Below the pieces are notes generated by a model. It saw only the letters and a list, made by a program, of their open reading frames with translations. It did not search any database and was not told where the DNA came from. A stretch of 64,000 bases of DNA from Pecten maximus (Eukaryota), in NCBI RefSeq assembly GCF_902652985.1, contig NC_047017.1, forward strand, positions 19,592,001-19,656,000, in the 5' to 3' direction. A program made the position numbers and the translations under genes. This document shows positions 21,999 through 49,938 of this stretch, piece by piece. The first letter of the stretch is position 1. Every line of letters starts with the position of its first letter.

Positions 21999-22021
21999 GT
22001 GTTTTTATACATAACAAATAA

Positions 22022-23230: not shown

Positions 23231-26200
23231 ATGTCCGAAGTACCAGAAGATGTCGAAATTCGAACAAAGGAGATGCATACGGGCGGGGAACCATTGCGAG
23301 TGATAGAGTCTGGCTTCCCCTCCCTCGGGGGCGACACCATACTGGATAAAATTCGTTTCATCAGGGAAAATTTTGACGCATACCGAAAATTTCTGATGTA
23401 TGAACCACGCGGTCACTATGACATGTACGGAGCATTGGTAGTTCCAGCCGACAACAAGAAAGCTGACATAGCCACGATCTTCATGCACAATGAAGGGTAC
23501 AGTACGATGTGTGGACACGCAGTTATCGCCCTTGGACGATACGCTGTAGATTCGGGATTAGCCCGGAACCCTTCCAGTCCGGAGACCCGTGTGGCCATCC
23601 AGTGTCCGTGTGGACTGGTAGAAGCGTTTGTGGAGTATGAAAATGGAAAGACCGGAAACGTCCGATTTAACAGTGTGCCGGCTTTTGTCTTCGCAACAGG
23701 TATGTTTGTCACACGTGTATATGTAACGGTTTGATTTATGCAATGAAGACGGGGTATGGAATACAAAACAGGATTTACTTAATTCAATGACAGCTAGTTC
23801 ACAAAAATTACAACATAAATACATGTAGCACCACAGAACATACATATTAGACTCGTCTATCAATACACCCAATACCAGATATTGAGAGTCTCATACCTTT
23901 GCACAGAGTAAGACCAACTACATACACCAACACTTGTACTATAACTAAACCATGTTTCAATAACGTGTCAGCCAATGGCTTCTTCACTGTCATTCAACTA
24001 CATTTCCCCCACACACTTACTACACGTATGTACAATGTTGCACATAGATAAGCATACAACTACAACTGCAATAGACGATTGTAAAGTATTATCTCTCGAA
24101 ACTCTCTCCCAAACTAGGTTAAGATTCTCATGTTACATAGTATTGTGTCCTACATTCTGGATAAAAAAATATATTATAATTTGATAAAACCACAGGGGTT
24201 AGGCGCGGACCCACGTCACAAAAAATAATTGTCAGACAATTATTATTATAGGATTTTACGTCCATGCTCAACGGACTTCATTAACATATCCTTATTTACA
24301 TGCGTCTGCATCTGGTTTGCAATTGCAGAAACAATCAGCACCCTTCTACTTCATGATACATATTACGTCAATGTCGAATAGCGAGATGATTCGTATCGCT
24401 TGAGATGCCTTGTTTCATTACGTAACAATATCATTACATTATACATGCATACAGATATATATTTTCCAAAAACACACGTCATAATTCTGAATGATATTCA
24501 TTGACAGTTATTAATAAAAAAGGGAAATTAATTTTAAAAACACCACCAAAAACTTTTAAATATGTATTTTGAAGGTTCTACTGATAATGTGTATTTATGG
24601 GTAAAGAGATTCAGAAACCTAGCCCTAGTAATCTCGCGGATGCGGCAGCTGTGCATCGCTACGTTATCTATTTGGTATATACATGTTCATGAATATTCAT
24701 TCATACCTATACTGGTACGTGTATAATATTTATATGTTTCAAGATGTTTCTGTGGATGTCCCAGAATATGGAAACGTGACCGTAGACATAGTCTACGGAG
24801 GAGCATTCTACGCCTTCGTAGCCGACGCGCAGTACAACTTCCGGTTGGGAGAGGTTCCCTTACAGGAAGTTAGGAACGCAGCCGGAGCTACTACAGGTGT
24901 TGTTATACATAACAAATAATACAAAATAACAAAACTACGGTAAATTTTACTATTGGCGTTACATTACATACAGACATAGTAGCACGCCTTGATCCGTATT
25001 TCTCGGGAAGCTGAGACTACGGACTATCTTGTGCTGTCATATGTTGTGTTCTTGGGGAAGATACTAAAATACACTATACCACTGTGGGAAGTATTCGCCT
25101 GCATTGTGTTTGTGAGGTAGCCACCAGCTACTACAAGGATAGACCGTCTCACAATTAAATGAATTGTGAGACGATGATGTCGATTTACCGACACATTTTC
25201 ACGTTTCTACAACTGCTCGACTTACATTAATGACATCATTAGATGTCAAATTGTGAATTATCATTAATGTTTGGTGACTTATTTTGATAAATGCGATGTT
25301 GGTAATATATGTACATGAATCATTCAATCGTTTGAAGAGCACCAAAAAGGAAGATGGAGCCCGCGAGAAACTTTTCTTCAGTCATCTTCCTGTCTGTGTC
25401 TACAAAGACATAAGTTTATTTTATCAAGTGTACATCCCATTGTTCTGCATTGTCTCCGCTAAGATGTAAATGGTTAATGGGCACCGCAACACAATGTCTG
25501 TGTCTTCTGCTGTTGGCGTGGATTTTTGTCTCTGCAAGTGTCTTGAACCACCATAAAACATCAATGTGTAATGCTGTCGTTGTAGTTCTGGTCGAGTTTT
25601 ATTGTTACTATCTAAATGTTGATTATCCTTAATTTAAGCTGATGTGTTTTGTTGATGTTCTTTACAACCAATGTATTTATCTGTGTTACTCTTTTTTGCT
25701 TTTAAATAAGACGCCCTTAAGAAGCAGTTAAAGCTAAGTCATCCGGACAGTGATGACCTCGCCTTTCTGTATGGGACCATCGTAACGGACGGACAAGACG
25801 GACAGGACGGATCCAGCGATAAACTTTCGTCTAATGTCTGTGTTTTCGCGGAAAGACAGGTATGAACTCCATGTAATTCAAGGCAAAGTACATACACAGA
25901 GTAGTCTATTGGTTATTGTATTATTATCATTATTATTTGTATATAATCATTTATACATGTCGGCACATCTCGGCCGATTCTCTACGATCATTACCGGGAT
26001 CGGCCGAGGTTAGCCGAATGATACTGTAGTTACAGTAATAGCACAATGGTATCTTCCTTAATTAAATTTCAACGAGTTGCATGAGCCCCTAGCTGTCATT
26101 GTTTGCCGATAATGAGATGTTTATAGTGAACCAATATATGAAAAAGAGCAAGCAAACCCATTCCCATTTATACATTTTTGATTGTTTGAATTTCTGTTTA

Positions 26201-26511
26201 ATGCCCTCTCCACTGTGACCATCTTCATATTCCCCCTTTCTTCTACACAGATTGATAGGTCACCCTGCGGTTCTGGAGTAACGGCCAGAATCGCCAGACA
26301 GTACCATAAAGGTTATGTCGGACTAGGACAAGCCAAGGAATTTCTGGGACCATCTGGAGCCAAATTCACAGCCAAGGCCGTAACGGAAGTGACGTATGGC
26401 GGATTCAAGGCAGTAGTGGTCGAGGTTTCCGGTAAAGGACACTACTGTGGCTCATCAACATTTTCTTTGGAGAAGGATGACGTCATAGGTCGTGGCTTTC
26501 TCCTTAAGTAA
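23231..26511 (+). CDS. L3HYPDH: Proline racemase family protein, trans-3-hydroxy-L-proline dehydratase-like, Cys/Cys type; gene D, 4 exons, 343 aa
   Basis: Exons 23231-23699, 24744-24896, 25711-25859 and 26251-26511; GT-AG, phases 1/1/0, 1032 nt. Motifs EMHTGGEPLR, EPRGHYDMYG, YSTMCGH, DIVYGGAFYA, FLYGTI, DRSPCGSGVTARIA, GFLLK*. The symbol denotes the orthogroup only. Confidence 0.92.
25030..25155 (+). mobile_element. CORE-type SINE fragment in intron 2 of gene D
   Basis: GTTGTGTTCTTGGGGAAGATACT...GTGAGGTAGCCACCAGCTACTACAAGGA matches the reverse complement of the element at 51530-51740. Confidence 0.55.
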
Positions 26512-26859
26512 TTTCTGGCCAACATGGCCATGATGGGAGCTGCTTTACTTGAGAATTTATTTGCAAATGGATTGTTAATACAAAAGGTATCCTATAACTT
26601 CTTGCGATTAATAGGCCTAACCATAGTTTTGAAAACACTTAATTTGGAAATCAATCAAGGAAAGTTGAAAGTGTAAAGTGGTTTTGTCCAAAATTGACTA
26701 ACGAAAAACAAAAATCTAGCTTTTATGTCTTTTTTCTGCATGTGCGCCAGGCTTTCTTTTCACCCTTTAGTAATGTATGCAGACGAAAACCCCAATGCGC
26801 TTACATCTTTGCATTCAATTCTTATACAACTTGCCAATTAAAACATACTTATATATGTA

Positions 26860-26940
26860 GTTTACATTGTGTTTGTATTATTGCTGGTTTACATTGTGTT
26901 TGTATTATTGCTGGTTTACATTGTGTTTGTATTATTGCTT
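26860..26940. repeat. 27-bp unit x3 (TTTACATTGTGTTTGTATTATTGCTGG)
   Basis: Direct tandem copies. Confidence 0.9.
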
Positions 26941-28239
26941 TAACATTTTCTAAAACCATATTCCAAATAGATACGGCTGACGCTTGTTATTCTTAGACAT
27001 CGTACAAGAAATTCGCAGTCCGGTTTGCGTACAAATTAGAATTGTATTCAGTAAGGACGAATTAAGATTATGACGAGGTAATCAATTATTCTTGCCCTTT
27101 CCTTAGTTCAGCCATGTCTGTTTGTCAGTTAGCAGTTATTTGCCGACGGGGTACCAGCTGTGTATACATGTATGAATGTTTATAAGTCGGTATCTTGTGT
27201 TGGTGTCGCCCCGATCACGCAGTGCCTTTAGCTTAACAACATTCGAGCTTATTTCTGATTCTGAATATAGAAAAAAAACTGGCTGCTTTGTCGTTGATTT
27301 GCTAATTATTAATTAACCGTCAAAAGCGTGCAGCTCCGTTAGATCTTCTGTTAATAGATTACATGTGTGTATCGATTAGTATCGATGACCAGCATATATA
27401 GGGGACTATTTTAATCCCCTGATTCTGAATTAATGGGTGAAAGTTTTAATACTACATGTAATCAGAAAGTGTCTGATGTTTTATTAAACATATCAGAAAC
27501 CTTTGGATTATATAAATAATGAATTCAGTATTTGTGTGTTTATGTGGGGGGGGGGGGGGGGGGGGGGGGCACAATTATCGCCTAGTCCAGTATTTCTTTT
27601 ACCCATCTAAATCTAGAGAGCTCAAAATATTTTTGTGCATAGTCTTATTTTTAATTCGTATTAACAGTGACCATAATCTTTGACATCTAAGCCCGAAAAT
27701 CTATCCAAAGCAAGCATTTAATTCGAAAAAAGCACCGGATAAAATAGTACCAAAGATAAAGTGCAGAAACCAAAAACTGACTCCCGGGGCACTTATGAAC
27801 ACGCTTCTGCATGCTCAGACAAACAAACTCTTGTCCACGTAGATTTCACAGGTGCATTCTATGGTTTTTATTACACAGGCAATCCCTGGTTATCTTATTT
27901 TTTATCGTTGACACAAGGTCAGTAATGAATTGATCTCTCCCTCAGTCGTCTATGTGAAGGTTGTAAACTTGTATGTTTACATTGGGGTGTAGTAGGTTTG
28001 AGAGATAATATACATTTTGTATACACCAGGATGTATTAATATGCAGGGGCACGTCAAATACTTTTACGATTTGTGTTTCTCGGGAATTTTAGATCGCGGA
28101 CATGTCTATGGTGTGGTTAGGTCATGTCGTGAGACACGCTTTCCCAATATTACTCTGGATAGCATACGACTGACCTTCTACAGCTACTACTAAAAATATG
28201 GAAACTCTACCTCAAAATGACCCTGGCTTGTCATGGACA

Positions 28240-28446
28240 CAGGGACTTGATAACTTGTTACAGTCTACATGTATTTGGACCTCTAGTGTGTATAGCACAT
28301 TTTCAGACGTTTTGGGGGGCTATATTTGAACACCGGGGATGTCAATTTTAGGGAATTCTAATCTAGCCCCACAAAACGTCTGAAAATGTGCTATACACAC
28401 TAGAGGTCCAAATACATGTAGACTGTAACAAATTATCAAGTCCCTG
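28240..28446. mobile_element. Fold-back MITE with about 85-bp arms, inserted in a SINE tail
   Basis: CAGGGACTTGATAA...TTATCAAGTCCCTG with near-perfect arms. The flanks TGACCCTGGC.. and ..GTGATAAACCC rejoin as a SINE 3' end. Confidence 0.8.
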
Positions 28447-28885
28447 GGTCAGGGAGTGATAAACCCTGCAACAGGCCATCAATAGGATACCGCAAAACTG
28501 TATAAGGGACTAGACCAGGTAATACAGGTACACAAAGTTAGACCAGGTAATACAGGTACGCAAAGTAACCAAGCGATGTAACCCAGGCTGACATTAAATT
28601 CCATTCCTATAAATCTTGCAAAATATGACAAAAGTTGTCCAAAGATTGTTCCTATGTAGCATTTTCAATTTCATGAAAAAACAAACGAACTAATAAAAAG
28701 TAACCATGTTTTTTTTGTGAACACAGATGTATTCGATGTATTGTCGCTTATCTTACGCTACCAAAATTGCGATAGTGATCACTCGGACACTAAACATGAT
28801 AAGGGTCTTCGATATATCTCACATGTAGGACATTCAAACTGATGAAACTCAGATGAAGATCCGAGCCTTGGTACAATCTCAGTCA

Positions 28886-28975
28886 CAGGGGCTTGACATA
28901 TTCCTATGACCAAGAATGAAAAAAAAATCAAGTCCGACCCCTAAATCTGGGTCATAGGAACGTGTCGAGCCCCTG
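28886..28975. mobile_element. 90-bp hairpin MITE-like element
   Basis: CAGGGGCTTGACATATTCCTATGACC ... GGTCATAGGAACGTGTCGAGCCCCTG; no clear target duplication. Confidence 0.6.
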
Positions 28976-31900
28976 TAGTTTTTATCATCTGTCAATAAAC
29001 GTGACACCGATTGCTCTGGATTATGGTGGCTGATTACGGTCATCTCGTGTTGTCGTTATGTCGCGTTCAGAAATGCGCGACAACACGACTGGGCTTTAGG
29101 TGTGTTTTCGAGAAAAATCGCAGTTACTCTAAAACTGAAGCCGCTATGAAAGCCGGACTTTCAGCATTTTAAGTTTCATCCTAAACCACATTTTTCGGCA
29201 TAGCCGTATGATAATCTTTTGTCCCCGGAAATGACGCGACAGGTGGCGTTACTGGTCAAGACGAAGTATGTGATTGGTCAATGTAGCGGTAAATGCAAAA
29301 TGCAGTTATGCAGTTAAAAACGGAACAAAGTTAAGGTTGAATGCAAGCTGAATAAGTGGATACATCTTTTCAAATGACACATTAATACAATTATATTCCT
29401 GATAGAAATGCAGTCGTATTCAGGCACGTAGCTGCCTATACGCAAATACGCAGTTGCGTACACATCAGTTTTCAACAACAACAAAACAAAAACAAAAACA
29501 AAACACTCAAAACAAAACAACAACAAAACAAAGAAAGAAAGAAAGAAAAAACTCTGTTATTTATATGAGCTTATCTATACACAAACTATGAATGCTGTCC
29601 CTAGGTGATGGTTCTAGTCAAACCCACTAATTGATATAACTATTCATTACGTGGTAGGGAACGCAATCAATCGGTCGGTTAAAGTGGGACAAAGAAAAAT
29701 CCCAAGACCTGTTTCTTTGGAAGAAATTTCAGCTCGCCCCGCAGGAACCATCAGCATCAGAAACAAGTCAAAATGGTACACCAGATGTAACAAAGCTCCC
29801 TGGTGGTTGTCAGAATTGCAAAATGCTTACGCTAACATTTTAGAGCATTCAGGACATAAAAGATCAATGGCAAATTATGCATTTTATATACAAAATTTGC
29901 AAGATATATGTATATATGAGAGGTTGAAGCAAATTCTAAATAGCACACAAAACTTAGTTTTGATATCCAACGGTTTACACAAAATATGGAGAAAATGAAA
30001 ATAAATCCAAATAATTTCAAAATTAGTTGTCAAATAAAAAAGATGCCAGATACATATGCATGTACTAATATAGACTTAAAATCTTAATATAGACGTAAAA
30101 GTGTTTCGATCAGTTTAAAATGAGCTTTGATACAAAAACGTTAAGTCCTAAACATAGGAAACTTAAATTAAAACAAAAAAATAGAATAATTCAATAATAT
30201 TTTTTTGTAACTTTACTCTAATAAATGATTATTAACTTAATTCCTGTTTGGCGTCCTCCACCTCTCTTGTCTTGATCAATCAGTCTATTTGGTATTTTAC
30301 CTTCAAAATAGAGCAAATTATTTTCTAAATTCTCCTAATTTTCTTCTGTTTATCTCTCCTACCATTCCCTTTTACAATACATATTTATTTTATACAATTC
30401 AGATTATCTTTTTTTTATACTAAACAGATTATATTTTAAATATGTCTCAAATACACGTATTTGCTTTTTTGCAGTTAGACGTACATGTAAAACCATTTCA
30501 GGTAAAAGTAGATTCCAATTGATTCCACGAGGAAAAGGGGTATCTGAAAGCTCTTTACACATGTCAGACACTCTAACAGCTATATTCAGATACGTGCTGA
30601 ATGTAAACTATATAGCATTGTTAGATCTCATATCCCTTAAAATGTATTATCTTATTATATAAGATATGTTATCACAATAATATGCCGAAACACAATACAA
30701 CATAGAATTATAATTGAAATCATTCCATTATAACAATTATACACAACGAGAAAAACTTTTTTTTCAAATATATGTGTGTATTTCGGCACAAATTGCATGA
30801 AACTTGTAGAAAAAATAAGTGCCTACATCATCTATTGTTAAACGTACATGTAGTGAATGAGCGAACACTGGAGATAATATCTCATTTACATATTTAAATT
30901 GCTCATTTAAATATGATTTAAAATTTGGGCATAGTAGTTAACATTTAATTTTTTTCTGGAGTCTGATCTAACCCTCCATCCTCCCTTTGGTGCCATTCCT
31001 ATAAAGGACTACTTACAACCGGAAAACAGGGTAAAGTCTGATTTACATATTTGTTACTGTTAATCTTAAAATGAAGAACAGGTCCGGAGTTATATATGCG
31101 CATAGAGTACAAAATTCACTATTGGAATTTTCGTCACTACATGACAGTTGATAAGATGCAGGCATGAATCAATACTTTTAAGGAAATCGTTTGCTTTCAA
31201 ACGTTAGGTGAACGTTACTATACGTATGCTTAGAAATGTTATTGAATACATGAAACACAGCTTTCTGAACGCAGATAGACACAGAAATCTTATTTTGAAA
31301 TGTACAGATTTTGATATTATATATGTACCCTTTGTCTGATCTTCAATGAAATTAGTAATTTAATGTATTTTTAAATCATTAGGTTTGCACACCAACGCTG
31401 TCACGAATGTTTTGCCTTGTATATCAAGGTTGCTAAATAGTGGGATTAACGTCTCCAAACGAGACCAAGCGTGGCTTACCTGGGTTGTCACATGAACACA
31501 GTTCACTGGTAGTTAAGCTTCTGAACTCTGACCCCTATCTGAGAGAGTGTCCTAGGCTCGGCTCTAACCGGAGCAAGGACATTAATCCTCGTCAATCAAC
31601 CCCTATCTGAGTACATGTATAATGATAATCATTATAATTCCAACTTTTAACTTAACTCTAGAACACATGTCGTGCTATGTTATGACCACCGGTACAATTA
31701 AAAGATTCATTTATATTAAATTCAATTCGACTTTACTGGAACTGTTATAACTACAATTGCATTTTTATATATAAATGTATTTTACCTACACATACCGTCA
31801 TGAAAACATCCCCCATTGTCGCAATGATCATCCCAAAACGTCGTTTACGCGCCACTTAAATACAAGGTTGATCTCAGATTTTTGGTCTTGATTTCTTTCT

Positions 31901-32389
31901 TTTACATCCCTTCCCACAGGAAAGGTTATGTACATATGGTTATTGAACACATATTCGGACATTATGTAAACGTGTTCCAAGCGTGGAAAATAAGGTAAAG
32001 TCAACACAAATTATCAATCTAAATGCTGTACAAGGCTCGTCGTTTCAAGAAAACAGGACAACGTAACTATTCGGACATCGTTAAATGAAGGACTTAAATT
32101 GGCCAAACACTTAACTGTATATCATAATACGGTACTCATTCACCCCTCATTTCATTTCTCTGCATACACATACAAAATAACTTGGCTACGCGCATGGTAT
32201 TATCACCAAACTGATTCAAACTGATATCATTTTGTTATCTGTGCTGAAACACATTAGTTCGTTCATTTATTTCACCAGCAGTTTTATATTATAAACACCA
32301 GCATTTAAACTATGCTAAGCTTAACATAGCAAATCGTTCCGGGCACACTTTAAGGAATATTGATGAAACTTGTCCCAGTTCCATAATTT

Positions 32390-32570
32390 TTGTTTTGTTT
32401 AACGTCCTATTAACAGCCAGGGTCATTTAAGGACGTGCCAGGTTTTGGAGGTGGAGGAAAGCCGGAGTACCCGGAGAAAAACCACCGGCCTACGGTCAGT
32501 ACCTGGCAACTGCCCCACGTAGGTTTCGGAGGGCTAGTGATAAAGTGTCGGGACACCTTAACCACTCTCC
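32390..32570 (-). mobile_element. tRNA-derived SINE with V-domain-like motif
   Basis: GCCGGAGTACCCGGAGAAAAACCACCG motif, (TTTTG)n tail, and ACCTTAACCACT (A-box remnant on the minus strand). Confidence 0.7.
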
Positions 32571-32806
32571 CCTCACGGTTTCTGCCGATAAGTGATAAGT
32601 TATATCCCAATAATTGTATTGCTGATCTGGTCGCCGGTGGTTAGTTAAACAATATCTTATTTGATAACAAGTTGTACAATACAATAAATCAAACGTGTAC
32701 AAGAGGATTTGAGTTAACAAGCTTAGAGCTTATGTAAAACCGTCTCCTTAAATGTCCATCGCCTGATTAAAATAGCATGTTCTTGGCATTAGTTACTGCA
32801 TGTAAC

Positions 32807-32968
32807 CAGAGACATATATACAGAATAGTTATCTCTGCTCCAGAGTCCATCCTTGCTGTGATTGGGACGTCCCCGACGATTATCGGTATGGATGATGATC
32901 CTGGACGTACCCTAAATACCTGTTCTACCTCCACATCTGAAGCTGTATCCTCTGTATATATGTCTCTG
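32807..32968. mobile_element. 162-bp MITE, P-element-superfamily-like
   Basis: Perfect 18-bp TIR CAGAGACATATATACAGA and perfect 7-bp TSD ATGTAAC (32800-32806, 32969-32975). Confidence 0.85.
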
Positions 32969-33101: not shown

Positions 33102-35859
33102 TTACAATAGAAACCCCCTCCCTATGACGTCATCTTCCTCCAAGGAAAACTCGGAAGAACCGCTGTAGTACCCCTTCCCGGAAACTTCAATGACTACCGC
33201 TTTGTATCCGCCCCACGTTACTTCCTGTACTGGTTTTGCCTGGAACTCGGATTGAATATGGCTCCTGAAAGTCCTGGACTGGCCGAGCTGGACGAACCCT
33301 TTGTGGTACAGAAGCGCCACTCTGGCAGTCGTACCGGACCCACAGGGAGATCTGTCAAACTGTACAAAAAATGTAGATATTACAATGCTTATGTTAGCTC
33401 ATAAGTATTTCCACAGAAATATTTCTACACGATTACATCTTTATTTTATTATTCATGTGGACAAGGTACGTTTTTCAAGAATCTTGAAACGGCTTTAATA
33501 CGCTGAGATGGAGAGGACAATGCCCCCAGGAAAGGTTGTACAAATGCTTACGAACTATAAATTTGAACACAGGCGTTGGATTTGGTTAGTTATAGCACAG
33601 GCGTAAGTTTTGTCTCTATTGATACTAACCAGAAGCAGACGCCTGTGGTTATAGAAAACACCCCCACTACTATTATATTTATTGTAAATATGTTTTTCTC
33701 TATACGTCCTGTCAGTATGTGAAAAGAGAATAACATGAATTTGAATTTGTACTATGTTTTTCCTATAAATACTAATCAGATTCAGGCGCCCGTGAGTTGT
33801 ATTCACGTGCACCGCCAATACTTGGAATAGTCGCATTGCCGAGAAAGAATATTATTTGCAGAACATTAATGTGACATTTTTATAATGTATGTGAATAATA
33901 TCGCGACCTGTTTCTCTGCAAACACACAAACATGTGTTGACGGGATGTCAGCTCGATCGTCTTGTCCATCCGTTACGATGGTCCCATACAGAAAGGCCAA
34001 ATCGTCACTCTCCGGGTGGCTTAGTTTTAACTGCTTCTTTAGAGCGTCTGAAATAACAGCACTACTTGAATTCAAGTAGGAAAATACCAAGAAGGGAAAC
34101 ATTTACATATTGGTTTGATATGAGTTGAAATCACCAAAAACGTATGTGTCGGAGCGACACGCATACCCCGACGGTTACCAAGGAAACGTCTGGAACTCTC
34201 TAGTGTGTTAACTGTTCAACTTTGTTAAGAGATGTAGGCATGACTTTTCAGAACAGTATCATATGTCTTAGTAACATATGTTTTAGTAACATATGTCCTA
34301 GTATTACATGTCTTAGTAGCATATGTCTTAGTAACACATGTCTTAGTAACACCTGTCTTATTGTCATATGTGCTAGAATTAGATATCTTAGTAACATATG
34401 CCTCAGCATCATATGTCTTAGTATCACATGTCTTTGTAACACCTGTCTTAGTGTCATATATGCTAGTATCATATGTCTTAGTATCATATGTCTTAGTAAC
34501 ATGTCTTAGTAACATATGTCTTATTAACATATGTCTTAGTAACATATATATTAGTATCATGTCTTCGTAACATGTCTTAGTATCATATGTCTTAGTAACA
34601 TATGTCCTAGTAACATCTGTCTTAGTATCATATGTCTTTGTAACATAATTGTGTCCTTGTTACACGTGTTCTAGTATCAGGCATATATATATACACACTT
34701 ACCTCAAAGGCACACTGTCTTATAGATATGTACACGTGTCGTAGTTGCATGCGTTCGTCTTAGTAATATATGTACACGTATCGTAGTTGCATGCGTTCGT
34801 CTTAGTAATATTTGTACACGTGTAGCGGTTGCATGCATTCGTCTTAGTAATATATGTACATGTGCCGTAGTTGCATGCGTTCGTCTTAGTAACATGCATA
34901 AAATAACAAACCAGTGAGTTACCCGTCGTGGCCGCTGCCGCACTCCTGATGACGTCAGGGGCTACGTCTCCTAACCGGAAGTTGTACTGAGTGTCGGGCA
35001 CAAAGGCAAAGAACGCCCCTCCGTATACGATGTCTGCTACGATACATCCGTAACCCGGAACATCCACGGACACACCTGGACCGAAATAATAGGAAATCAA
35101 CAGTACAGCCAACACTTATAAAACAAGGCTGAATATCACCAGATAATGGTGTACCTGTTCCAAACATTCTCCGGAAGATCTCTTTCTATCGTAATGACCA
35201 TATTAATTGTTATCATAATTATGTATATCACATATTGTGTTAGGAAATAAACAAATTATCGTGGAAAACTATATGTCATCAAAATATACTGAAATACTAA
35301 AATAAGTATCTGGTCAAGCAAAATAAAACAGAATGTAAATCTAATATATATATAATCAGCATTTGTATGGCCTTTGAATAATTATACCTGTTGCGAAGAC
35401 AAAAGCCGGGACACTGTTGAATCGGACGTTTCCGGTCTTTCCACCTTTATACTCCACGAACGCCTCCACCAGTCCGCATGGACACTGGATCGCCACGCGG
35501 GTCTCCGGACTGGAAGGGTTCCGGACTAATCCCGAATCTACGGCATATCGTCCAAGGGCGATAACTGCGTGTCCACACATCGTACTATAGCCCGCGTTAT
35601 GTATAAACATTGTGGCCAGGTCGGCGTCCTTGTCATCCGGCTCTACCAACAACGCGCCAAACATGTCACGATGGCCGCGAGGTTCGCTCATCAGTAATTT
35701 CCTGTAAGGGTCGAGATGTTCCCGGGTGTAGCGAATCTTATCCAATATGGTGTCGCCCTTTGGAACAGGGAATCCAGACTCGACTATCCTTAAGGGTTCT
35801 CCGCCTGTATGCATCTCCTTGGTTTTGATGACAACAGTGTTAGGTGTTGGTTCCGCCAT
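33102..35859 (-). CDS. Proline racemase family protein (L3HYPDH-like paralogue), Cys/Cys type; gene E, 4 exons, 340 aa
   Basis: Exons 35859-35388, 35075-34923, 34047-33908 and 33359-33102; GT-AG, same phases as D, 1023 nt. Motifs EPRGHRDMFG, YSTMCGH, FLYGTI, FDRSPCGSGTTAR. Confidence 0.92.
34250..34895. repeat. About 18-bp (ATGTCTTAGTAACAT) array at 34250-34650 and 42-bp x4 array at 34725-34895, in intron 2 of gene E
   Basis: Tandem units visible; both arrays share GTCTTAGTAA. Confidence 0.9.
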
Positions 35860-38577: not shown

Positions 38578-39303
38578 GAATGTTCTAGTATAACGGGCCG
38601 TTTATAACATGTAACGACTAACATCATATCCTTTATTATGAGGGCATGGTTTGTTGCATACCAATATTGTTTTCGGTTATAATACTTCTAGTTATAGAAG
38701 TTTAAAATGCAGTTCATTCATGATGTGAAATAAATGCTAAGAATTTGAATTCTTACTAGCCGAAACAGCAATGGATACGTTGCAAATCCACTTCAGTACA
38801 CTTTCGGATAATTGTCCGAAATTGATAAAACTTGTCCATGAAAGATAAGTAATATAACCCAGACAAGATTCATAGAGTAAATTTTCAGCATCGTGGGTAT
38901 ATGAATGAGCCAACTTAAGTAGGTTAATTATTCTATAGGCAAACCTTTGCGATACGAATTTGGTTTGCTTGTAGGGAAAACGAAACTCACTGAATTAAAA
39001 AAAAATCAAGCTCAATTTACGTACAACTTATATTTATTTTATATAATTATAAAAGCATATCTTCGGAACATTTTTGATGTGCATGGAAATCAAACGCGTC
39101 AACTCACAAATTTTAAAAGCAATTATCGGTGCGTGCCGATTAGAACGCCAGAAATCACAGACACCTGTGGTGCAGTGACAGGTATGACGAGCTTGTGGAC
39201 CGTAATTTCACACCTGGTAATTGTTTAGCGGTATACTAACCCACTCAAACTTGTCTGTAGTTTGGATACTTCTTCGTCGTAGATGTCGGGTATGGGTTTG
39301 AGT

Positions 39304-40718
39304 TTGGGTCGTAAAGCTCTTTTTGCCCTACGTTCAAAGTGTAATAATTTGAACTTAAATGTAAAAACTATGTTGCATTTGTTTGATACTTATATTAGCA
39401 GTATTCTTTGCTATGCCTGTGAAGTATGGAGTACTCATAATGCTTTGGAAGTTGAAAAGGTACATTTAGAATTTTGTAAAAACTTACTGGGCGTTAAAAA
39501 ATCTACCTGTAACGCTATGATTTATATCGAACTTGGGCAACTCCCACTGAAGAATATGCAACTTAATAGAATGTTAAAATTTTGGTTTAAATTGTTGAAT
39601 TCTGATAATTGTATACTAAGAGAGGCTTACAACTTGCTCTACATGGAAATTGAGAAAGAGAATCCAAAACAGAATTGGCTCTTGCATGTGAAGCACAAAT
39701 TATTTAAACTTGGATTTGGATATAAATGGTTACGTCAGTTACCTTCTGATATTGTTTATATGCCTATTATAAAAGAAAGAATTAATGACCAGGCCTCTCA
39801 GACATTGTTTAACTCATTACATATGTCGAGTAAATGTGATCTATACAAACATATGGTTAATAAAGTAACACTGCAATTCTACCTCACCAAATCATTACCA
39901 AGTCAATTGAGAAAAATGATAACAAAATTGAGACTTTCAGCACACAATCTAGCTATAGAATCAGGAAGGTATAGGAATATTCCCAGGTGTCATAGGTATT
40001 GCATTAACTGTAATTCTTTAGAAGTTGAGGATGAATTTCATTTTTTACTCGTATGTCAAAAATATTCAACTCTTAGAGGAAAATATATAAAGATATATTT
40101 TTGGAAAAAACCTTCAGTCTTCAAAGTAATAGAATTACTGAACACAAATAGTCATAAAGAATTGAATTTGCTAGGAAGATTTATCAAAGAAGCTTGTGGT
40201 TGCAGAATTGTGTAAATATACTCGGTTTGTGTAGGTGTTGAGTTTTGATGTAACACGTTATTGCATAATAGTGTACTTATAATTGTTTAACCTCCCGGTG
40301 TCCGTCTGTCGTGTTTACCAAATGGTATTATCTGATACTTTTTTGCCATGTCTCTCTGACTGACTGTTATAAAAGTTCTCCTAGAATCCTTATTCTGTAA
40401 CAGTGTAATATAATTAGTATCAATTCTGTGATTGGGCGCAGCCCTTGTAAGCCCTTGTAAGATTAAGTGGAATAAAATGTATTTTTTGCTGATGTTGCCA
40501 GTAGACAATATGGTTGATTAATACTCCTCATAATATAGTACATATGTCGGTTAATCGGTTTCCGTATTTAATTATAATAAGTCAATTACGTTTTGTAATT
40601 TTATTATAATACATGTTGTATCCATTTATATATATATACATATATAAATACATGTATATTAATTTATGTACTGATGGGTCATAGACCTAAAGTCAATAAA
40701 TTAATTGAATTGAATTGA
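39304..40718 (+). mobile_element. 5'-truncated non-LTR retrotransposon (RTE-X-like): post-RT region, CCHC finger and 3' UTR
   Basis: ORF to 40215 with YACEVW, FCKNLLGVKKST, LRLSAHNLAIESGRY and CINC..EDEFHFLLVC; ends AATAAA followed by an (ATTGA)n tail. Confidence 0.85.
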
Positions 40719-41152
40719 GTTCCTTCCTACACCTCTTCTTGTTGTACTTGATAGTTAGCCATACTGAGAATGATGCATTTTCTGGTGATAGACTGTTATA
40801 TATACTTATTTTTAAACTTGGGTGTTCAGTGCATGGCATGTAGCTTGGGTGTTCAATTTTCTTCATTAGCTTAAATTAGTTACAACATCTCTCCTGAAGA
40901 TGAAGATAGCCTAATTAGTGACACCTCTCCTGAAGTTGATGATTTGTAATATGGGGGATACATATAAAAATAAGTCAATTATATCAAAAATGTTAAAATA
41001 TAAATAACTTAAAACAATTTATCATCTTATTAAAGTGCACGTTTTATTTTTTAAATTCAAACCATCTGTGAATATATGGATAAATCTATTATTTTTTATT
41101 TATTTGTCAACTGATATATTCAGTAATAGACACCTTAATTTACCTGTACAGG

Positions 41153-43750
41153 AGGTGCTGGACGCAATATGTCGTACCAAAGTAGGTAAGGCGGCTGGAG
41201 TCGACGGTATTCCGGCGGAAGTGTTAAAAAACGACGCCTGCGTGGATATCATGTTCTCATTGATCAGCTATTGTTTCGACCATGGAATCGTCCCTGATAA
41301 ATGGAAGCAGGGTATCATCAACCCTCTTGTCAAACCAAATAGTACTGATCCTATGGACCCTTTGTCTTACCGAGGTATAACCCTATTGTCCGTTCCTTGT
41401 AAAGTTTATTGCGATATCCTCAACCGTCGTCTTTCTTCCTGGCTAGAGGAAAATAATATCCTACACGACGCGCAGAATGGTTTTAGGAAGGATAGAAGTT
41501 GTCAGGACCACGTGTATTCGCTATACAGCGTCGTGAAAAATCGCATCAACGCTAAACAGTCGACCTATTCATGCTTTATAGACCTACGCAAAGCCTTTGA
41601 TACGGTCGTCAGAGACTGTTTATGGTATAAACTTCTACAGACTGGAATAAAAGGTGAGATTTTCAAGGCTGTTTTTGCTCTTTATGATGGTGTTTCTTGC
41701 TGCGTGCGCGTCAACAACCTACACACTGATTGGCTATCTGTGTCACGTGGGGTAAAACAAGGTTGTTTAGCCTCCCCAACACTCTTTACAATTTACATTA
41801 ATGACTTGACTGAGGAACTTAACGCTTCAGAATTTGGTATTGACATCGATGGTGTCTTGCTTAGCTGTCTCTTTTACGCCGACGACATTGTGTTAATGAC
41901 GTCATCAGAAGAGGGTCTCCAATCCCTTCTGAACATTGTCTCATCTTGGTGTTCTCGATGGCGCCTTTCTGTTAACGCTGGAAAGACTAAAGTCATGCAT
42001 TTTAGACATAAAAGTAAACCTGCTACTCAGTTTTCGTTCACCTGTAATGGACACTCTCTTGAACGTAAAGACCGTTATAAATACTTAGGACTCTGGTTCG
42101 ACGATTACGCCGATATGAACATCGCGGTGAAAGAACTGTCTAAATCCGCAAGCCGAGCCCTCGGTCTCCTCATCTCTAAGTTTTATAGTGCCGGTGGAAT
42201 GACTTATTCAGTATTCACAAAGTTATATGAGAGTCTTGTTGAGCCTGTCCTTCTTTACTGTTCCGGTATTTGGGGACAGCCCCAAAGAAAAGAGATAAAC
42301 AATGTCCAAAATCGCGCTATGAGAGTTTCATCCAAGAACACCTCTAACGTCGGCATGTTTGGAGACATGGGATGGTTATCTACGCAAAGTAAGCAACACA
42401 TCGAAGTATTTCGTCTATACTGTCGAGTTAACTCTGTTAATAGTGATCGTTTACTCAATAAAATTCATTTGTGGTCCAAGCGGAGAGGAACTTCCTGGGA
42501 TTCGCGGGCACTTCGGCTTAGCCGCAAATATGATTCCCAAGACATCGTAGGATCTGGATCCAAACCCACGAAACAAATCATGAACATGATCAAATCTAAA
42601 ATTAGACATAAAGACGAAAGTGAGTGGTTTGGCCAGATGTGGAATGACCGTGGCAACCCTAATGGAAATAAATTACGGACTTACAGGATTTATAAGAAAG
42701 ACCGAATAACCGAGCAATATGTGAACATTTACATGCCTAGAGCTTACCGAAGCGCGCTAACCAAGGTGAGATGTGGTAGTGCACCATTAATGGTAGAGAC
42801 TGGTCGCTACAATAGACCTCCTACTCCATTAAACGAGAGATATTGTCCGTTCTGTGAGGATGTAGTCGAAAACGAAATGCATTTTTTGTGTGTCTGTAAT
42901 ACATATAGTGACTTAAGAGTTAATCTTTTTAATCAAATGGAACATAGTGATGTAAATTTTAAAAATTGTGATCATATTGGAAAGTTTAATTTATTAATGA
43001 CAAATTCAGATGTCCAATTTTTACTTGCCAAAACTGTATTTTTAATGTTACGTAGAAGAAGAACGTTTATGCAATTTATTTAATATCTGTTTCTTATTTT
43101 CCGTGTCTGTTAATAGCCTTTTAATTCATAAAATTGATATAGTTAAGACACATTTTATAATTATTTTATGTTGTCTATGTTTTTTTAGTCATAATGATAT
43201 CCACATATATCTTATGTATAAATTTATAAATTTTATGATGATAGTATTAGCATGTACATAAATGATAGAGATGTTGATATTTATACCATATCTAACCTGT
43301 CACTCTGAAAGAGTATTCAGTGATGGGATTTGTGCGACTTGTCGGTAGGGATAGGCTCAACCACTCTCGTACTTCTCCCATCACTGGCTTTGGTACAAGT
43401 GTATTTTCAAACAAGTACTAGTCATAATATAGTTGCTATCATTTTTAATTATTTATACATTCCGTCCATATATGTGCGTATGCAGTTATATTTTAAACCC
43501 GATAATGACTCTTTTAAGAACTAGATCTTTGTACTTTTAGTTTGTCTATTATGATTTCTGATTCGTATTGATATATTGTATGATATTATATATTTATTTA
43601 ATAGTGTATATAGATAATGTTCTAATAGTGTCTCATAAGCCAAAATTGGCTGGATGTCGATATCAATTTTATGCTAAGTCTCAAATGCTGTTTTATTATG
43701 ATTGTATTGACATGTGACACTTTAATAAAATATGATTGATTGATTGATTG
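41153..43750 (+). mobile_element. 5'-truncated non-LTR retrotransposon (RTE-X-like) with an open RT domain
   Basis: ORF to 43083 with KAAGVDGIP, YRGITLL, QNGFR, FIDLRKAFD, GVKQGC, YADD, YKYLG and a CCHC finger; no endonuclease domain. AATAAA plus (GATT)n tail. ATTTACCTGTACAGG occurs on both sides (41138-41152, 43766-43780). Confidence 0.92.
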
Positions 43751-43959
43751 GTAACTGGAACGTTGATTTACCTGTACAGGTAGCAGTTAACTTAAATGTT
43801 AAAACAACACTCCTCCTAAATTGTTTACATAAGGTTTTGGGAGAACCAGGATATATATTTTTCAGTTTTGGGAGAAACAGGATGACACCTTCTAACGAAC
43901 TCACTTTAATCATTGCCTTCGGCCTCGGGAAACAGTTCACCTGGTACCAACACCTCGTG

Positions 43960-44495
43960 AAAACAGTTTTTATTGAAGACGTTTGCACGAAATATGAAAT
44001 TTTAACAGATGCTAAATTCGGGTTTCGTCCTGGATTGAGCACTATTGATGCTATTATTCGCATTACATTCAATTATAACCAAAACATTATCGTCTAAGAA
44101 ACGTTTACACTGCTGTTTTGTTGATTTTAGACAAGCTTCTGACTTTGTAGATAGGTTAAGTTTATGGCGTAAGTTGACTAGGCTTGATATTCGCGGTAAC
44201 ATTTTACTTATTTTTAAGTCGCTTTATAAATCAGTCAAATCTTGCGTTTCGCATAATGGTCGATGTTCTATTTTTTTCGAAAACAATGTCGGATTAATGC
44301 AAGGGGAAATTCTATCACCTCTTTTGTTTTCACTTTTCGTAACCGATTTTGAAACTTCTTTTATAGAGAGTGGTGCTAAAGCCTGTGATTTCGGTGAATT
44401 AAGCTTATTTCTCCTTATGTACGCAGATGATATTGTCATGATTTCTGAATCGGTGGAAGGTCTTCAAAGTCTTTTAGATAGCCTATATGATCTAT
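43960..44495 (+). mobile_element. Frameshifted internal RT fragment of another RTE-X-like LINE
   Basis: FGFRPGLSTIDA / CCFVDFRQA / GLMQGEILSPLLFSLF / YADD spread over two frames. Confidence 0.85.
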
Positions 44496-46148
44496 ACATT
44501 GCATATATTAAGCATCACTCATACATGATTTCTAGTGTTTTGTTTGAACAAATACGAACATGTAATTCGAAAAAAATGTTTGTTACATTTAGTAATGGGT
44601 TGAACTTTGACAAATAATGACACGAAAAACATGTAACGTGTCCTTTTGTAGGTTGAAAGTCGACACACCAACCAATGAAAGCTAAAGAAAAAGTCCAAGT
44701 TTGAGTAAATTTTAATTCCGGAGACGTCGGCATGTTATAATGACGTGACGTCATCGTTCTGTCCATTGTTCGATTGTTCTACGTCATTTATTTTCAAATC
44801 CAAGTTTGTTCAAAATCTCGCTTGGCACTTCCTAAGGAGAATCCTGTGGCACTCAATGGGTTTGACAACGTAACATATCAAAATCATGAAGAAAGGATCT
44901 TCAAACTCAATGGTGAGATATTCTATTTAACCTGGTTCATTCTGGCGAGTACATTTATTTTTTAAGTAAAACGACAGGGAGCGATATCATAATTGTCAAC
45001 GCGTCGGCAACATAACATTTCAGTGAAATCACGCTATAAAATGGAACTTTTACGCTTTCTGATTGGTTAAGATTTTTTTTCATACCACTCTGAAAAGAAT
45101 TCCGAGAATGGCGCGGAAAATGTGACGTCACAATACGACAATTGACGTTGCGTATTAATTTGAGAAAAAGAACCCCATATAAAACCAGTAAAATTGTACA
45201 TAAAACATGTTTTAAATTAGAGAATTATTTTCAAAAATAAATTACAAAAAAATGTGTATAAGCGTTGATGTCAATTATTTTTAGTTTCATAGGGGTATGA
45301 ACCTTTTTTTGTGATAACCATCTGTTGATAAGATATTATTGTGTAAACCACAATTACCTGTTTATGTCTCGCCCGTCATGTTGGTTCAGGTTTGGTAAAT
45401 GATGTTGAAATAACAGAAAAAATAACATCAATATGTTGAAAATGAAAATGTTACTAGATTGGTACCCTTTGACTTTTTAACTGATTAGTTTTAAATTGAA
45501 ATTTACAAAATTAAAATTAAGAGTAAACTCATCTGTAAATCGAGATGTCCATACTATGATAAATTATATAGGCTTGATTGTCACTGCAACTAGATAGTCA
45601 GACAAAATTTACCGAACATCAAACATAAACAAAATATTGCACTACTCGTGTTGTCATGTTCAAAGTAAATTGCAGGCGGTGTTAAATGAGAAACATGGTT
45701 TAGATAGACTTGCTTGTGTGTCTTCTAATTAAGGGACACTGAGAGAGCAGAACTATCCCATTGTAATGCTCGTGATCTTCAATCTCTCCTTCTTTTCCTC
45801 ACTACTCAGATTTTGTGTTTTGTTTTCTTCTCTAGGTGTCCCCTTGACACTTGTCCTCATACGACCCTTCATGACTGTTGCGAGAACGTCCCAAAACAAA
45901 ACAAATCATTGATTGTTATATGTGCGTGTCCTATGTGCAATGGTGAATTCATTTGTAGCTTGTAAGAAATCGAGTTACGCGACCTATGCTATTTTTGTCC
46001 TGTTCTATAAATGATTCATGGGTATTATGTTTCAAACAGAAGTGTTTAAAATATGATCGAAGTGAGAAACAGACCGTAGCGATAATTCACGGGCATCTTA
46101 ATAGAGCGAAACCACACCACTTGACAACATCCAGAGAGAAAGACGACA

Positions 46149-49100
46149 ATGGCAAAACGTACACCAAACAATGTCCTTATCAAGACGAAGGAGATGCATA
46201 CGGGCGGAGAACCCTTAAGGATAGTCGAGGCTGGATTTCCTGCTCCTAAGGGCGACACCATATTGGATAAGATTCGCTACACCCGGGAACATCTCGACCC
46301 TTACAGGAAATTACTGATGAGCGAACCTCGCGGCCATCGTGACATGTTTGGCGCGTTGTTGGTAGAGCCGGATGACAAGGACGCCGACCTGGCCACAATG
46401 TTTATACATAACGCGGGCTATAGTACGATGTGTGGACACGCAGTTATCGCCCTTGGACGATATGCCGTAGATTCGGGATTAGTCCGGAACCCTTCCAGTC
46501 CGGAGACCCGCGTGGCGATCCAGTGTCCATGCGGACTGGTGGAGGCGTTCGTGGAGTATAAAGGTGGAAAGACCGGAAACGTCCGATTCAACAGTGTCCC
46601 GGCTTTTGTCTTCGCAACAAGTAAAACTGGCTAGGTTATTTCTTTAAAATAAGCGTTCAAAATACACACAAGATATTAGAACATTTCAATTCAAATTGGT
46701 AGTCAGATAGAGCATGGTCAAAATTTGACATTAAACTTCTTTTCTTGCATAATTTAATGGCTAAAATACAGTTATCAACATGTTTAATTTGAACTGTTAC
46801 GTCGACTTCAATATAGAAATGTTGCAGTTGATTACATGGTCAACGTAATGACCAACGACACAAATCAACAAACAAACGTAACCGGTCAGCTTAGAAACAG
46901 TTAAACAAACAAATAACGTGTGTTGCAAACAAAAATCAAATCAAAATGTTGATAAATATAAAATTATTTTTGATCAGTGCTTGGTTTATCATCTAAACGG
47001 GAAAGATTTACTGTCAATATTTTATATCTACAGTCACATGTTAACGACATTTTGACTATGAGTGCGAAAGCATTATGAAGGTGCTTTTTTTTCTCTCACT
47101 AAAAAGCATAAACGAGGTCAAGCTTTTGTTAATATATATGAGGCGTGAAGTAATTGTCTGCTTTATCGTACATAAATGTGGGACAAGTCGGGACCTTTTC
47201 AATATTTATGCCCTTAATTGCTATTTACTTAATATTCTTCCTACTCACGACTTTTTATCTGAGAGATCTTCACGGCCCGCTTGTGAAGAGTGCTATACTA
47301 TTTATTAGTCAGTTCGGTCTCGAGCTGGACAAAACGATAGTCCTGTAACACAAGAGGCAGCTGGTCGGCGATAAATTACCTGACGTTATCGTTCTGTCAA
47401 CCTCTGCGTAGTAGACAATAATTGGTAGTGTAAATATGAAATATTAAATCGCATTGAAAGGCTCTTCTTTCATAGGCGACGAACATGTGGCAACCCCGTT
47501 ATTCGCGTCAAAAACAAGAACTATTCGTAATTTTATGCCTTTTCTCTCCCGTATTATCAGTATGACAGTCCAAATTCTGAGAAGCAATTGAGTTCTTATG
47601 CCAATGTCTCAAAAAGGTTTTTATCCCTAAATACACCGAAATTTATTATATCTGTATGGGGCGTGTTATGCATAACATAATACAATGCATTTATTTTCGG
47701 TTTTGTTTGAATAAAAATGATAATTTTAGAGAAGCTGACTCGTCCATTATCCTTAATTTCGAGACATTCGACCATAGATTCTGGTTGATATTCCGTAAAA
47801 GATGTTTACAATGTGATCTAGATCTAAATATGTACACACGCGAAACTTTAAAGTTAAACGTTGACATCGACGATCTAAGTACCAATAGTCTCTTTGACGG
47901 CGACTTGCAGGCCAGACAAAACTAGCAATGGCGAAAATGACACTAAAAATAAATGTTGGACGTCATGGAGACAAGGGAAAAACAAACGAATAAGGTCAAG
48001 TTTGGGATCAATTATTGGTAGGATAATTTCCATCGCTCCTCCCATAAAAGTGAAAGTTATAGGAGATTGAGAGACTTCCTTGTTGAGCTTAAGAATCTGG
48101 GTTGTGGTTGTCGCCAAAGAGGAATCCTTCGTGAAAGAGGAAAGAGTGTAACATATAAAGTGTGGGTCACCTTACTAGAGCATATGGTTGAAGTTGTACG
48201 CTTAGAGAGTATGCTAGAGGTCGCTAGTTTGGTCCCAGATAAGATAGGTTATTGATACACTGATTCCATGAAAATCACACTCAACACAATTCCCAACGTT
48301 TCGGAACATCCTGCAAGTCTTTAGTGGAGTCACCAATCACATTCTCTTAATGATGTCAATTTGATTTTCCGTGTTCATAGACATTTTATCTTTTGCATTC
48401 AGGTATAAATGTGGAGGTTCCGGGGTATGGTCACGTGATTGCAGACATTGCTTATGGAGGGTCTTTTTTCGCCTTTGTGACTGACAGCCAGTTCAACTTC
48501 CGGTTGACAGAGGTTGCTCCGGAAGTCGTTAAAGCTGCTGCAGCGGCCACAACGGGTAATTCAAATTATCGATAATGCCGAGTTTGACCACCACCACGTG
48601 CGATTTTTAACATATTGTTGCAAAAGCTACAAAGACCAAGGATACTTTTAAAACATAAACCACACCAATTTCTAGTAACAAAGACAAAGTTGAAACAGAG
48701 AATATGTTTTCTGATTTTGATCTTGACCATGTTTAATTCTAATCCGGCCCAAGTGACCGTACCTCTCTTTAACATTCAATACTCCAATCTAGCTACACAA
48801 TTTGTATTTTACCTAGACGCCCTGAAGAAGCAGCTGAAACTTAGTCATCCCAAGAGTAACGACCTCGCCTTCCTGTTCGGTACCATCATAACAGACGGGC
48901 AGGATGAGCGGACGGACATTTCGTCAACACATCTGTGTGTTTGCAGAGAAACAGGTGTGTTACCATCGGCTACATTTTAATTTTAGTTAAGACAGGAACG
49001 GGGCACAAATCCCTAACCAACGATCCATATATTATGTATTACACAGGCAAACATGTCTTCATGTTAATTCAGGTCAAATTGAGGCCAAGCTCAGGTCTTA

Positions 49101-49938
49101 TTGACCTAAATAGAGCAGAATAGTCGATTCATATCAAGAAATTGATCTGAATTTGACCTGAAATTGACATGAAAATTTCACCTCAATTCACATGAAGATT
49201 AATGACCTTGAAATTGACCTCGTTTTCAGGTTATTTTCAGGTCAATTTCAGTTCAATATTTGTTCATGTCAAATTTACCTCAAGACATTTTTCGTGTGTA
49301 TATGCTACATATAAGTTGATATGGACCGTGGGATGGGAATTTGTGTCAAGACCCTGTGAGGCTAGGAGTAATCCTTTACGAGACCCTGTGGGGCCTAGAA
49401 TAATCCTTAACAAAATGAATGGGGCGCCGTTTTACTTTCTGTTCCATTTAAGCGATACCACTAATATCATGAAGCATACATTCTGATTAAGCATTTTATG
49501 TATTTTTTCGAGGGCGTCGGGTTGGGGTAGTAGAATTTTTATAATTGTATTTTTGCGTTGGATTATTATTAACTATTTCACTACAATGAGTGTGGGTTAA
49601 GTGAAAACTTAAATACAAATTAGAAAATGTATATAATAAGATTGTTTTTCTCGTGATTATTTTCGGAAACTTTACAGCTTGACAGATCCCCTTGTGGTTC
49701 TGGCACGACTGCTAGGATGGCGCTACTGTACCACAAAGGGTGCTTCCAGCTCGGCCAGTCTAGAACTTTCAGGAGCCATATTAAATCCGAGTTCCGGGCC
49801 AAGGCTGTACAGGAAGTGACGTGTGGCGAATACAAAGGGATTGTGGTAGAAATATCCGGAAAAGGGTACTACTGTGGATCTTCAGAGTTTTTCGTGGAGG
49901 AGGATGACGTCATAGGACGGGGGTTCTTAATTGAATAG
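46149..49938 (+). pseudogene. Proline racemase family gene F (L3HYPDH-like paralogue, Cys/Cys type); 2-bp deletion in exon 3, otherwise intact
   Basis: Exons 46149-46620, 48403-48555, 48817-48954 (138 nt versus 140 in E) and 49678-49938 (LDRSPCGSGTTAR). May be a functional gene if the deletion is a sequencing error or if the GT at 48957 is used as donor. Confidence 0.7.
49042..49298. mobile_element. Non-autonomous CAC-terminated TIR element (CMC/EnSpm-like) in intron 3 of gene F
   Basis: TA|CACAGGCAAACATGTCTT ... AAGACATTTTTCGTGTG|TA, with many TGACCTGAA / TTCAGGTCA subterminal repeats in both orientations. Confidence 0.6.

Follow-up and report, generated by a model that had tools for sequence, protein, structure and literature searches.

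A 64,000-nt stretch of the scallop Pecten maximus genome (contig NC_047017.1, positions 19,592,001 to 19,656,000; hereafter the window) contains three four-exon genes of the proline-racemase family, D, E and F. Their motifs and place in the tree show them to be Pectinidae paralogues of the animal trans-L-3-hydroxyproline dehydratase L3HYPDH, in which a second Cys has, secondarily as it seems, replaced the dehydratase's catalytic Thr; the reaction and the substrates are inferred. We give an even chance to the reading that their products would be cofactor-free, two-Cys 2-epimerases or racemases of 3-hydroxyproline or proline. In this superfamily, proline racemase (ProR) and 4-hydroxyproline 2-epimerase (HypE) position two Cys on opposite faces and carry out a 1,1-proton transfer; the dehydratase has one Cys, with a Thr in the place of the other (PMC4113996). 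The published typology equates a Cys-Cys pair with a racemase or epimerase and a Cys-Thr pair with a dehydratase (PMC3958920, PMC4364671). The Thr-to-Cys mutant of human C14orf149, to which the initial annotation of this sequence had also appealed, is indeed credited with trans-3-hydroxy-L-proline (T3LHyp) epimerase activity in the passage of PMC3958920 that cites Visser 2012, a study whose results are also relayed by PMC4364671 and PMC9309405.

The predicted activities differ between the paralogues. D would most likely be a T3LHyp 2-epimerase, because it keeps the whole dehydratase pocket alongside the Cys; it would be the natural counterpart of the engineered human T273C enzyme and might retain some dehydratase activity. 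In E, as in F should it be functional, part of the pocket is ProR-like, and the substrate preference has probably shifted to proline or to a different hydroxyproline isomer. A wider proposal is more tentative and in our judgment has rather less than an even chance: animals would have repeatedly converted L3HYPDH back to a two-Cys racemase or epimerase (molluscs, cartilaginous fishes, possibly barnacles and a sea cucumber), making D-imino acids (cis-3-hydroxy-D-proline, perhaps D-proline), and in scallops the enzyme would have split into three conserved paralogues whose pockets differ, leaving these animals without a dehydratase. To our knowledge, the two-Cys class was thought to be confined, among eukaryotes, to trypanosomes.

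Gene structures and catalytic motifs

D (23231-26511) and F (46149-49938) lie on the forward strand and E (33102-35859) on the reverse strand; all junctions are canonical GT-AG, with intron phases 1/1/0. D and E are intact, with 343 and 340 codons, and the coding sequence of F sums to 1021 nt, which is not a multiple of 3. Exons were searched singly and never joined into a spliced model; full-length scallop orthologues served as proxies for the complete proteins. A degenerate DNA pattern for DRSPCGSG matches the window exactly three times (26254 and 49681 on the forward strand, 33356 on the reverse strand), where shuffled sequences are expected to yield none, and the second catalytic Cys is encoded by TGC in D and by TGT in E and F, just as initially annotated. 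The MCGH motif, also noted at that time for exon 1, is encoded six times (13817, 17798, 20612, 23507 and 46428 on the forward strand; 35580 on the reverse strand). There are therefore six exon-1 copies rather than three, the others belonging to the truncated duplicates A, B and C described below.

In D, exon 1 (23231..23699) extends from the start codon to a phase-1 donor (CAG/GTATGT), contains MCGH at 23507-23518 with the first catalytic Cys codon at 23510-23512, and matches Pfam family PF05544 at 3.2e-45 and the human L3HYPDH structure (7qpo) at 3.3e-51. Exon 2 (24744..24896; 153 nt, phase 1 to 1, AG/GT junctions) covers PF05544 positions 144-197, and exon 3 (25711..25859) encodes FLYGT and NVCVFAERQ and matches 7qpo over residues 242-288 (3.4e-12). 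Exon 4 with the stop codon (26251..26511) encodes DRSPCGSGVTA, which aligns column for column to the human DRSPTGSGVTA and confirms the annotated Cys (TGC, 26266-26268) where the human enzyme has Thr.

On the reverse strand, E exon 1 (35388..35859) contains MCGH at 35569-35580 and a Phe at pocket site 1 (GHRDMFG), and matches 7qpo at 5.3e-53. Its exon 2 (34923..35075) is defined by frame and junctions, exon 3 (33908..34047) encodes FLYGT and THVCVFAEKQ, and exon 4 with the stop codon (33102..33359) encodes DRSPCGSGTTA, with the TGT codon at 33342-33344. Likewise, F exon 1 (46149..46620) has MCGH at 46428-46439 and Phe at site 1; exon 2 (48403..48555) again follows from frame and junctions, exon 3 (48817..48954) encodes FLFGT, and exon 4 with the stop codon (49678..49938) encodes DRSPCGSGTTA (TGT at 49693-49695). 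The remaining motifs in the initial annotation hold fully for D alone: FLYGTI is found in D and E but is FLFGT in F, GSGVTARIA is found in D but is GSGTTAR in E and F, and the GFLL ending is found in D and E but is GFLIE in F.

Compared with E, F exon 3 lacks 2 nt within a TG-rich run near 48933-48945, at its 3′ end. Consequently, exon 4 is out of frame with the conserved donor at 48954, and one of the three genes in the initial annotation is frameshifted. A GT two bases downstream of the conserved donor restores the frame but swaps the conserved VFAEKQ for VCRETG; if F used it, the strand leading into the catalytic loop would be lost. Slippage or a sequencing indel within the TG-rich run is a plausible origin of the defect.

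Family membership and genome-wide census

D, E and F each contain both superfamily signature motifs, MCGH and DRSPxGxG, and the Pfam model PF05544 (Pro_racemase) scores 155 bits on exon 1 and 69 bits on exon 4, against a gathering cut-off of 27. Six-frame searches of the whole assembly (918,306,378 bases in 3,983 contigs) returned 15 exon-level matches with the Pfam model and 20 matches with a Thr-type abalone protein, all of them within the window. The initial annotation had raised the question of a Thr-type copy elsewhere; neither of these searches found one in the assembly, and because all family matches lie inside the window, the genome has no separate Thr-type copy. It does contain one OCD/mu-crystallin-family gene, on contig C1, from a family that supplies pyrroline-2-carboxylate (Pyr2C) reductases. 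Contamination, initially judged unlikely, and recent horizontal transfer are both rejected by the introns and by the orthologues in other scallops.

Of the solved structures, human L3HYPDH is the closest to each exon tested. Full-length scallop orthologues score 321-340 bits on the NCBIfam dehydratase model and 253-271 bits on the proline racemase model, a margin similar to that of Thr-type animals and smallest in the E-like and F-like orthologues. The cut-off of the dehydratase model NF045511 is 540, yet a Thr-type Xenopus protein reaches only 372, and the cut-off is non-discriminating for animals. Taken alone, exon 4 of E scores best on a proline racemase model (63 versus 57 bits), as does exon 4 of F (73.9 bits on the proline racemase equivalog model versus 63.5 on the dehydratase model). 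All three genes possess the Cys/Cys pair of proline racemase (EC 5.1.1.4), with Cys where the dehydratase marker DRSPTG has Thr, but the structure, NCBIfam and tree comparisons place them nearer to the dehydratases than to the ProR subfamily.

These results bear on an alternative that we consider unlikely, though far from negligible: D, E and F may still be physiological T3LHyp dehydratases that tolerate Cys in place of Thr and are correctly named in the databases. The genes' position within the L3HYPDH clade and the higher dehydratase scores of the orthologues both favor it, as does the census, which leaves no other family member in the genome for the job alongside a candidate Pyr2C reductase gene. 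The catalytic and pocket residues, considered below, point in part the other way.

Phylogeny, selection and gene conversion

The tree combines full-length homologues with exon-1-only rows for the window genes. The window rows nest among pectinid and other bivalve orthologues in the animal L3HYPDH clade (Shimodaira–Hasegawa-like approximate likelihood ratio test support, SH-aLRT, of 100 and 95), and an outgroup tree agrees; together with the closest solved structure, this upholds the annotated membership of the animal L3HYPDH lineage. Within the bivalve/mollusc clade, D and the duplicate B fall among the pectinid 'a' paralogues, and E and F join the 'b' set. Exon by exon, E pairs by identity with Ylistrum_b and Mizuhopecten_b, and F with Argopecten_b and Ylistrum_c, which shows that E and F are older than their exon 1 implies. 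Three paralogue lineages are kept across Argopecten, Mizuhopecten and Ylistrum; intact orthologues of D, E and F exist in other scallops, and every orthologue that retains the motifs is Cys/Cys.

The synonymous divergence (dS) between E and F ranges from 0.75 to >1.3 in exons 2-4, in contrast to 0.10 in exon 1, where the last 300 nt of the two genes are 100% identical (35388-35690; 46320-46620). This contrast points to gene conversion in exon 1. Over the last 200 nt of exon 1 (23500-23699 in D), D is 90-94% identical to E and F, compared with 64-72% upstream. Summed over exons, the ratio of nonsynonymous to synonymous divergence (dN/dS) is 0.12-0.16 for all paralogue pairs, F included; purifying selection has therefore acted on all three lineages, that of F as well, through most of their past.

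The Thr/Cys state changes at least three times on the tree. A single Cys clade is rejected (approximately unbiased test, p = 1.6e-57, with a likelihood gap of 240 units), for a group that was defined after the tree had been seen. Once more distant homologues are added, every member of the grade below the animal clade has Thr, and the simplest reading is that Cys is secondary in molluscs and cartilaginous fishes. It looks as though Cys arose secondarily and repeatedly at the catalytic site. In the standard code, changing Thr to Cys takes two nucleotide changes.

Marine alphaproteobacterial T3LHyp dehydratases (P0318, P0357, P0175, P0209 and others) are 58-62% identical to animal L3HYPDH and are interleaved with animal lineages in the tree instead of standing apart as a distant outgroup, which hints at a transfer between bacteria and animals at some point.

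Distribution of the Cys/Cys state in animals

We read the motif in matches retrieved from large protein collections with exon 1 and full-length relatives as queries. All 22 bivalve homologues, from 16 species, have Cys; the sample includes Solemya, Argopecten, Mizuhopecten, Ylistrum, Mytilus, Pinctada, oysters, Mercenaria, Ruditapes, Mactra, Mya and Potamilus. Cys is also found in all eight cartilaginous fishes sampled, the barnacles Pollicipes and Amphibalanus, the gastropods Patella (a limpet) and Haliotis asinina (an abalone), the sea cucumber Holothuria and a glomeromycete fungus. Thr is found in bony vertebrates, two hemichordate species, a crinoid, the gastropod Haliotis cracherodii and 108 of the 111 nearest bacterial homologues. 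The Cys/Cys state is the ordinary one in the bivalves sampled and in several other animal groups, and the cluster is not the exceptional set that the initial annotation had taken it for. The same annotation had conceded that its proposal would lose its point if the state were ordinary and already characterized; it is ordinary, but our literature search found no paper assaying or discussing the mollusc, barnacle or shark Cys/Cys members. As it had anticipated, these animal proteins, the scallop orthologues among them, are named "trans-L-3-hydroxyproline dehydratase(-like)" in the databases.

Several of these relatives have features of their own. The shark, ray and chimaera L3HYPDH proteins (P0312, P0334, P0375, P0384, P0416, P0418, P0419, P0425) read DRSPCGSG in 8/8 cases, compared with DRSPTGSG in the sampled bony vertebrates; with the remaining pocket unchanged, they amount to a clean natural variant of human L3HYPDH at one residue. 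The Haliotis asinina (Cys) and H. cracherodii (Thr) proteins (P0321, P0358) are sister rows on short branches (SH-aLRT 99-100), and their difference is either a residue flip within the genus or a Thr/Cys paralogue pair in each species. Gene models in Batillaria attramentaria (P0001, 480 aa) and Solemya velum (P0167, 560 aa) fuse two tandem family copies, so that local tandem duplication of the family gene is a recurrent event in molluscs beyond the scallops; MCGH is gone from the Batillaria copies.

Pocket residues and the predicted reaction

Among the reported substrate-contact sites, a site-1 Phe is confined to ProR-like enzymes, HypE having Ser or Val there, and at site 5 ProR has Phe where HypE has Cys or Tyr (PMC4364671). 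With site 1 assigned from HMMER alignments to solved structures, it is Tyr in two solved dehydratases (human and T. litoralis) and in D, and it is Phe in three solved proline racemases (7pb3, 6j7c, 1w61) and in E and F. At site 5, D and E have Phe, and the frameshift removes the position from F. These residues lead us to reject 4-hydroxyproline 2-epimerase (EC 5.1.1.8), an option in the initial annotation: in place of the reported HypE residues, the genes have Tyr or Phe at the first of these sites and Phe at the fifth, and the solved HypE structures are distant.

We surveyed 307 fetched proteins in which all three motifs were readable (258 Thr-type, 49 Cys-type). Site 1 is Tyr in every one of the 258 Thr-type proteins and Phe in 15/49 Cys-type proteins (E, F and 13 others). 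The residue after G-x-G is Val in 249/258 Thr-type proteins and a different residue in 28/49 Cys-type proteins, mostly Thr as in AsProR (7pb3). A column scan picked out another 13 positions where conservation is 95% or more among Thr-type proteins and 75% or less among Cys-type proteins, such as R41, A100 and N249; V267 is likewise conserved in the former and relaxed in the latter. Within the window, D has a shark-like, 'minimal switch' form (Tyr at site 1, Asn at -10, Val after GSG), and E and F have a 'derived' form (Phe at site 1, His at -10, Thr after GSG), to which F adds FLFGT.

The derived form raises a narrower possibility within the epimerase/racemase reading, namely that E and F, the pectinid 'b' genes, are true proline racemases yielding free D-proline while D acts on 3-hydroxyproline. 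Their site-1 Phe, their Thr after GSG (compare DRSPCGTGTSA in AsProR), the preference of both exons 4 for the proline racemase equivalog model and, in the F lineage, the alteration of a second pocket Tyr all fit this proposal. We nevertheless find it improbable: the overall sequences are nearer to the dehydratases than to ProR, a Ser rather than a Leu stands three residues before the first Cys, F is frameshifted in the assembly, and our literature search found no report of D-proline in bivalves.

Several observations weigh against a two-Cys epimerase or racemase function in general. D, E and F all keep YSTMCGH, whose Ser, three positions ahead of the first Cys, is shared with the dehydratases and is replaced by Leu in proline racemases, and the pocket of D is dehydratase-like apart from the Thr-to-Cys change. 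The Cys-type sample comes mostly from one clade, the molluscs, and the relaxed positions may partly be lineage effects; when site-1 Phe was set against the Val/Thr position, an independent-pairs test gave p = 0.25 and was underpowered. The genome lacks a Thr-type copy yet keeps the OCD/mu-crystallin-family gene, and if scallops use the known degradation route for collagen 3-hydroxyproline, one of D, E and F must dehydrate. Moreover, the reaction does not follow strictly from the catalytic pair, since Ser/Cys 4-hydroxyproline epimerases and Ser/Thr trans-3-hydroxyproline dehydratases exist (PMC4113996).

The retained-dehydratase alternative gains from this last point and from D, which has kept the site-1 Tyr, the Asn at -10, the Val following GSG and YSTMCGH. 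It must also explain why the lone Thr-to-Cys change is reported, in the passage cited above, to confer epimerase activity on the human enzyme, and why 15 Cys-type proteins, E and F among them, have lost the site-1 Tyr that is invariant among the Thr-type proteins. In addition, neutrality does not easily account for a codon change that takes two steps and has recurred at a catalytic residue. The racemase or epimerase function proposed in the initial annotation is, on this sequence evidence, a reasonable idea.

Implications

The interest lies at the level of the family, in a repeatedly evolved Cys/Cys state of animal L3HYPDH that is annotated as a dehydratase; the cluster itself is an ordinary bivalve feature with local duplication debris. 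If two-Cys animal proteins are epimerases or racemases, hundreds of animal genes named "trans-L-3-hydroxyproline dehydratase" would be mis-annotated, including the one orthologue sampled from each of eight sharks, rays and chimaeras and all sampled bivalve copies. Cys/Cys animals would then have an endogenous route to D-imino acids that is independent of pyridoxal phosphate, and their 3-hydroxyproline catabolism would have to differ, for example by passing through an epimerase and then a D-amino-acid oxidase. The recurrent Thr-to-Cys replacement would be a clean natural experiment, in which one residue switches the superfamily between elimination and 1,1-proton transfer.

Truncated duplicates and neighboring sequence

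Upstream of D, on the forward strand, A, B and C (13437..22036) are truncated tandem duplicates of D exons 1 and 2. According to blastn, they are copies of a 2.85-kb unit, 93.5-99% identical to the D unit at 22105-24934. Tandem Repeats Finder and blastn delimit four such units (13437-24934), each consisting of an 11-bp microsatellite (ATGACAAAATC, 60-73 copies), a D-type exon 1 and the symmetric 153-nt exon 2. Exons 3 and 4 are present only after the last unit, in D, and A, B and C lack them. Exon 1 of A is interrupted by an insertion of ~1.2 kb, which holds a long poly-G/poly-C run at about 14880-15220; exon 1 of C is frameshifted, and that of B is intact and differs from D by one residue (blastp). 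A reading of A-C as 'variable/constant' cassettes was rejected, given the single-residue difference between B and D and the broken state of A and C.

The broken copies A and C, the missing exons 3 and 4 of A-C and the 2-nt frameshift of F could suggest that the cluster consists largely of decaying duplicates or assembly artefacts that have no enzymatic function. We regard this as very improbable: D and E are intact with canonical splice sites, the dN/dS values are low with F included, all three genes have intact orthologues in other scallops, and the F defect sits in a run where slippage or a sequencing indel is plausible.

Between E and F, at 39283-44614, lie RVT_1 reverse-transcriptase open frames of a non-LTR-type retroelement (LTR, long terminal repeat), one of them 691 aa long. 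The cluster is flanked by exons of a GPR180/TMEM145-type transmembrane protein gene (8465-11234, reverse strand) and by a Na/Ca-exchanger exon (59617-60000, reverse strand). We rejected these neighbors, together with the reverse-transcriptase fragments, as a hint to a pathway, as they have no evident metabolic tie. The window also contains a minisatellite at 52109-54836 (26-bp unit, 110 copies, GC skew +0.62), minisatellites at 4706-6840 (44/104/192-bp units at 4.7-6.5 kb, GC skew -0.57), and 16-bp and 39-40-bp minisatellite arrays at 1-484 and 7335-7642.

Comparison with known systems

The window genes share features with four groups of characterized enzymes. With the 4-hydroxyproline 2-epimerases (P. 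aeruginosa PA1268, 2azp; P. protegens, 4j9w/4j9x), they have in common the Cys/Cys pair and the superfamily fold, but the relationship is distant (about 1e-16 to 1e-18 on exon 1) and the HypE site markers are absent. The bacterial and archaeal T3LHyp dehydratases (T. litoralis 6r76/6r77; alphaproteobacterial enzymes) include alphaproteobacterial pockets with the same residues as D; they differ in their Cys/Thr pair (108/111 in one survey; 7/7 named ones).

The proline racemases (T. cruzi PRAC, 1w61; AsProR, 7pb3; T. litoralis ProR/HypE, 6j7c) have the Cys/Cys pair in MCGH and DRSPCG and a Phe six residues before the Asp. Their site-1 Phe is common with E and F, as is, in AsProR, the Thr after G-x-G. 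However, they match exon 1 more weakly (3.8e-25 to 5.2e-34, versus 3.3e-51 for 7qpo), belong to another subfamily on the tree, and read YLNMCGH and GTG where the window genes read YSTMCGH and GSG.

Human L3HYPDH is the best solved match, with D exons 1, 3 and 4 aligning at 3.3e-51, 3.4e-12 and 7.5e-25, and has in common with the window genes MCGH, the QCPCG cysteine, FLYGT, the GFLL(K) ending, its length and the animal clade. It differs in having DRSPTGSG for DRSPCGSG; in addition, the equivalent of its Tyr76 is Phe in E and F, and that of its Tyr241 is Phe in F. The nearest functional analogue is its engineered T273C mutant, which the citing passage in PMC3958920 reports to be a T3LHyp epimerase.

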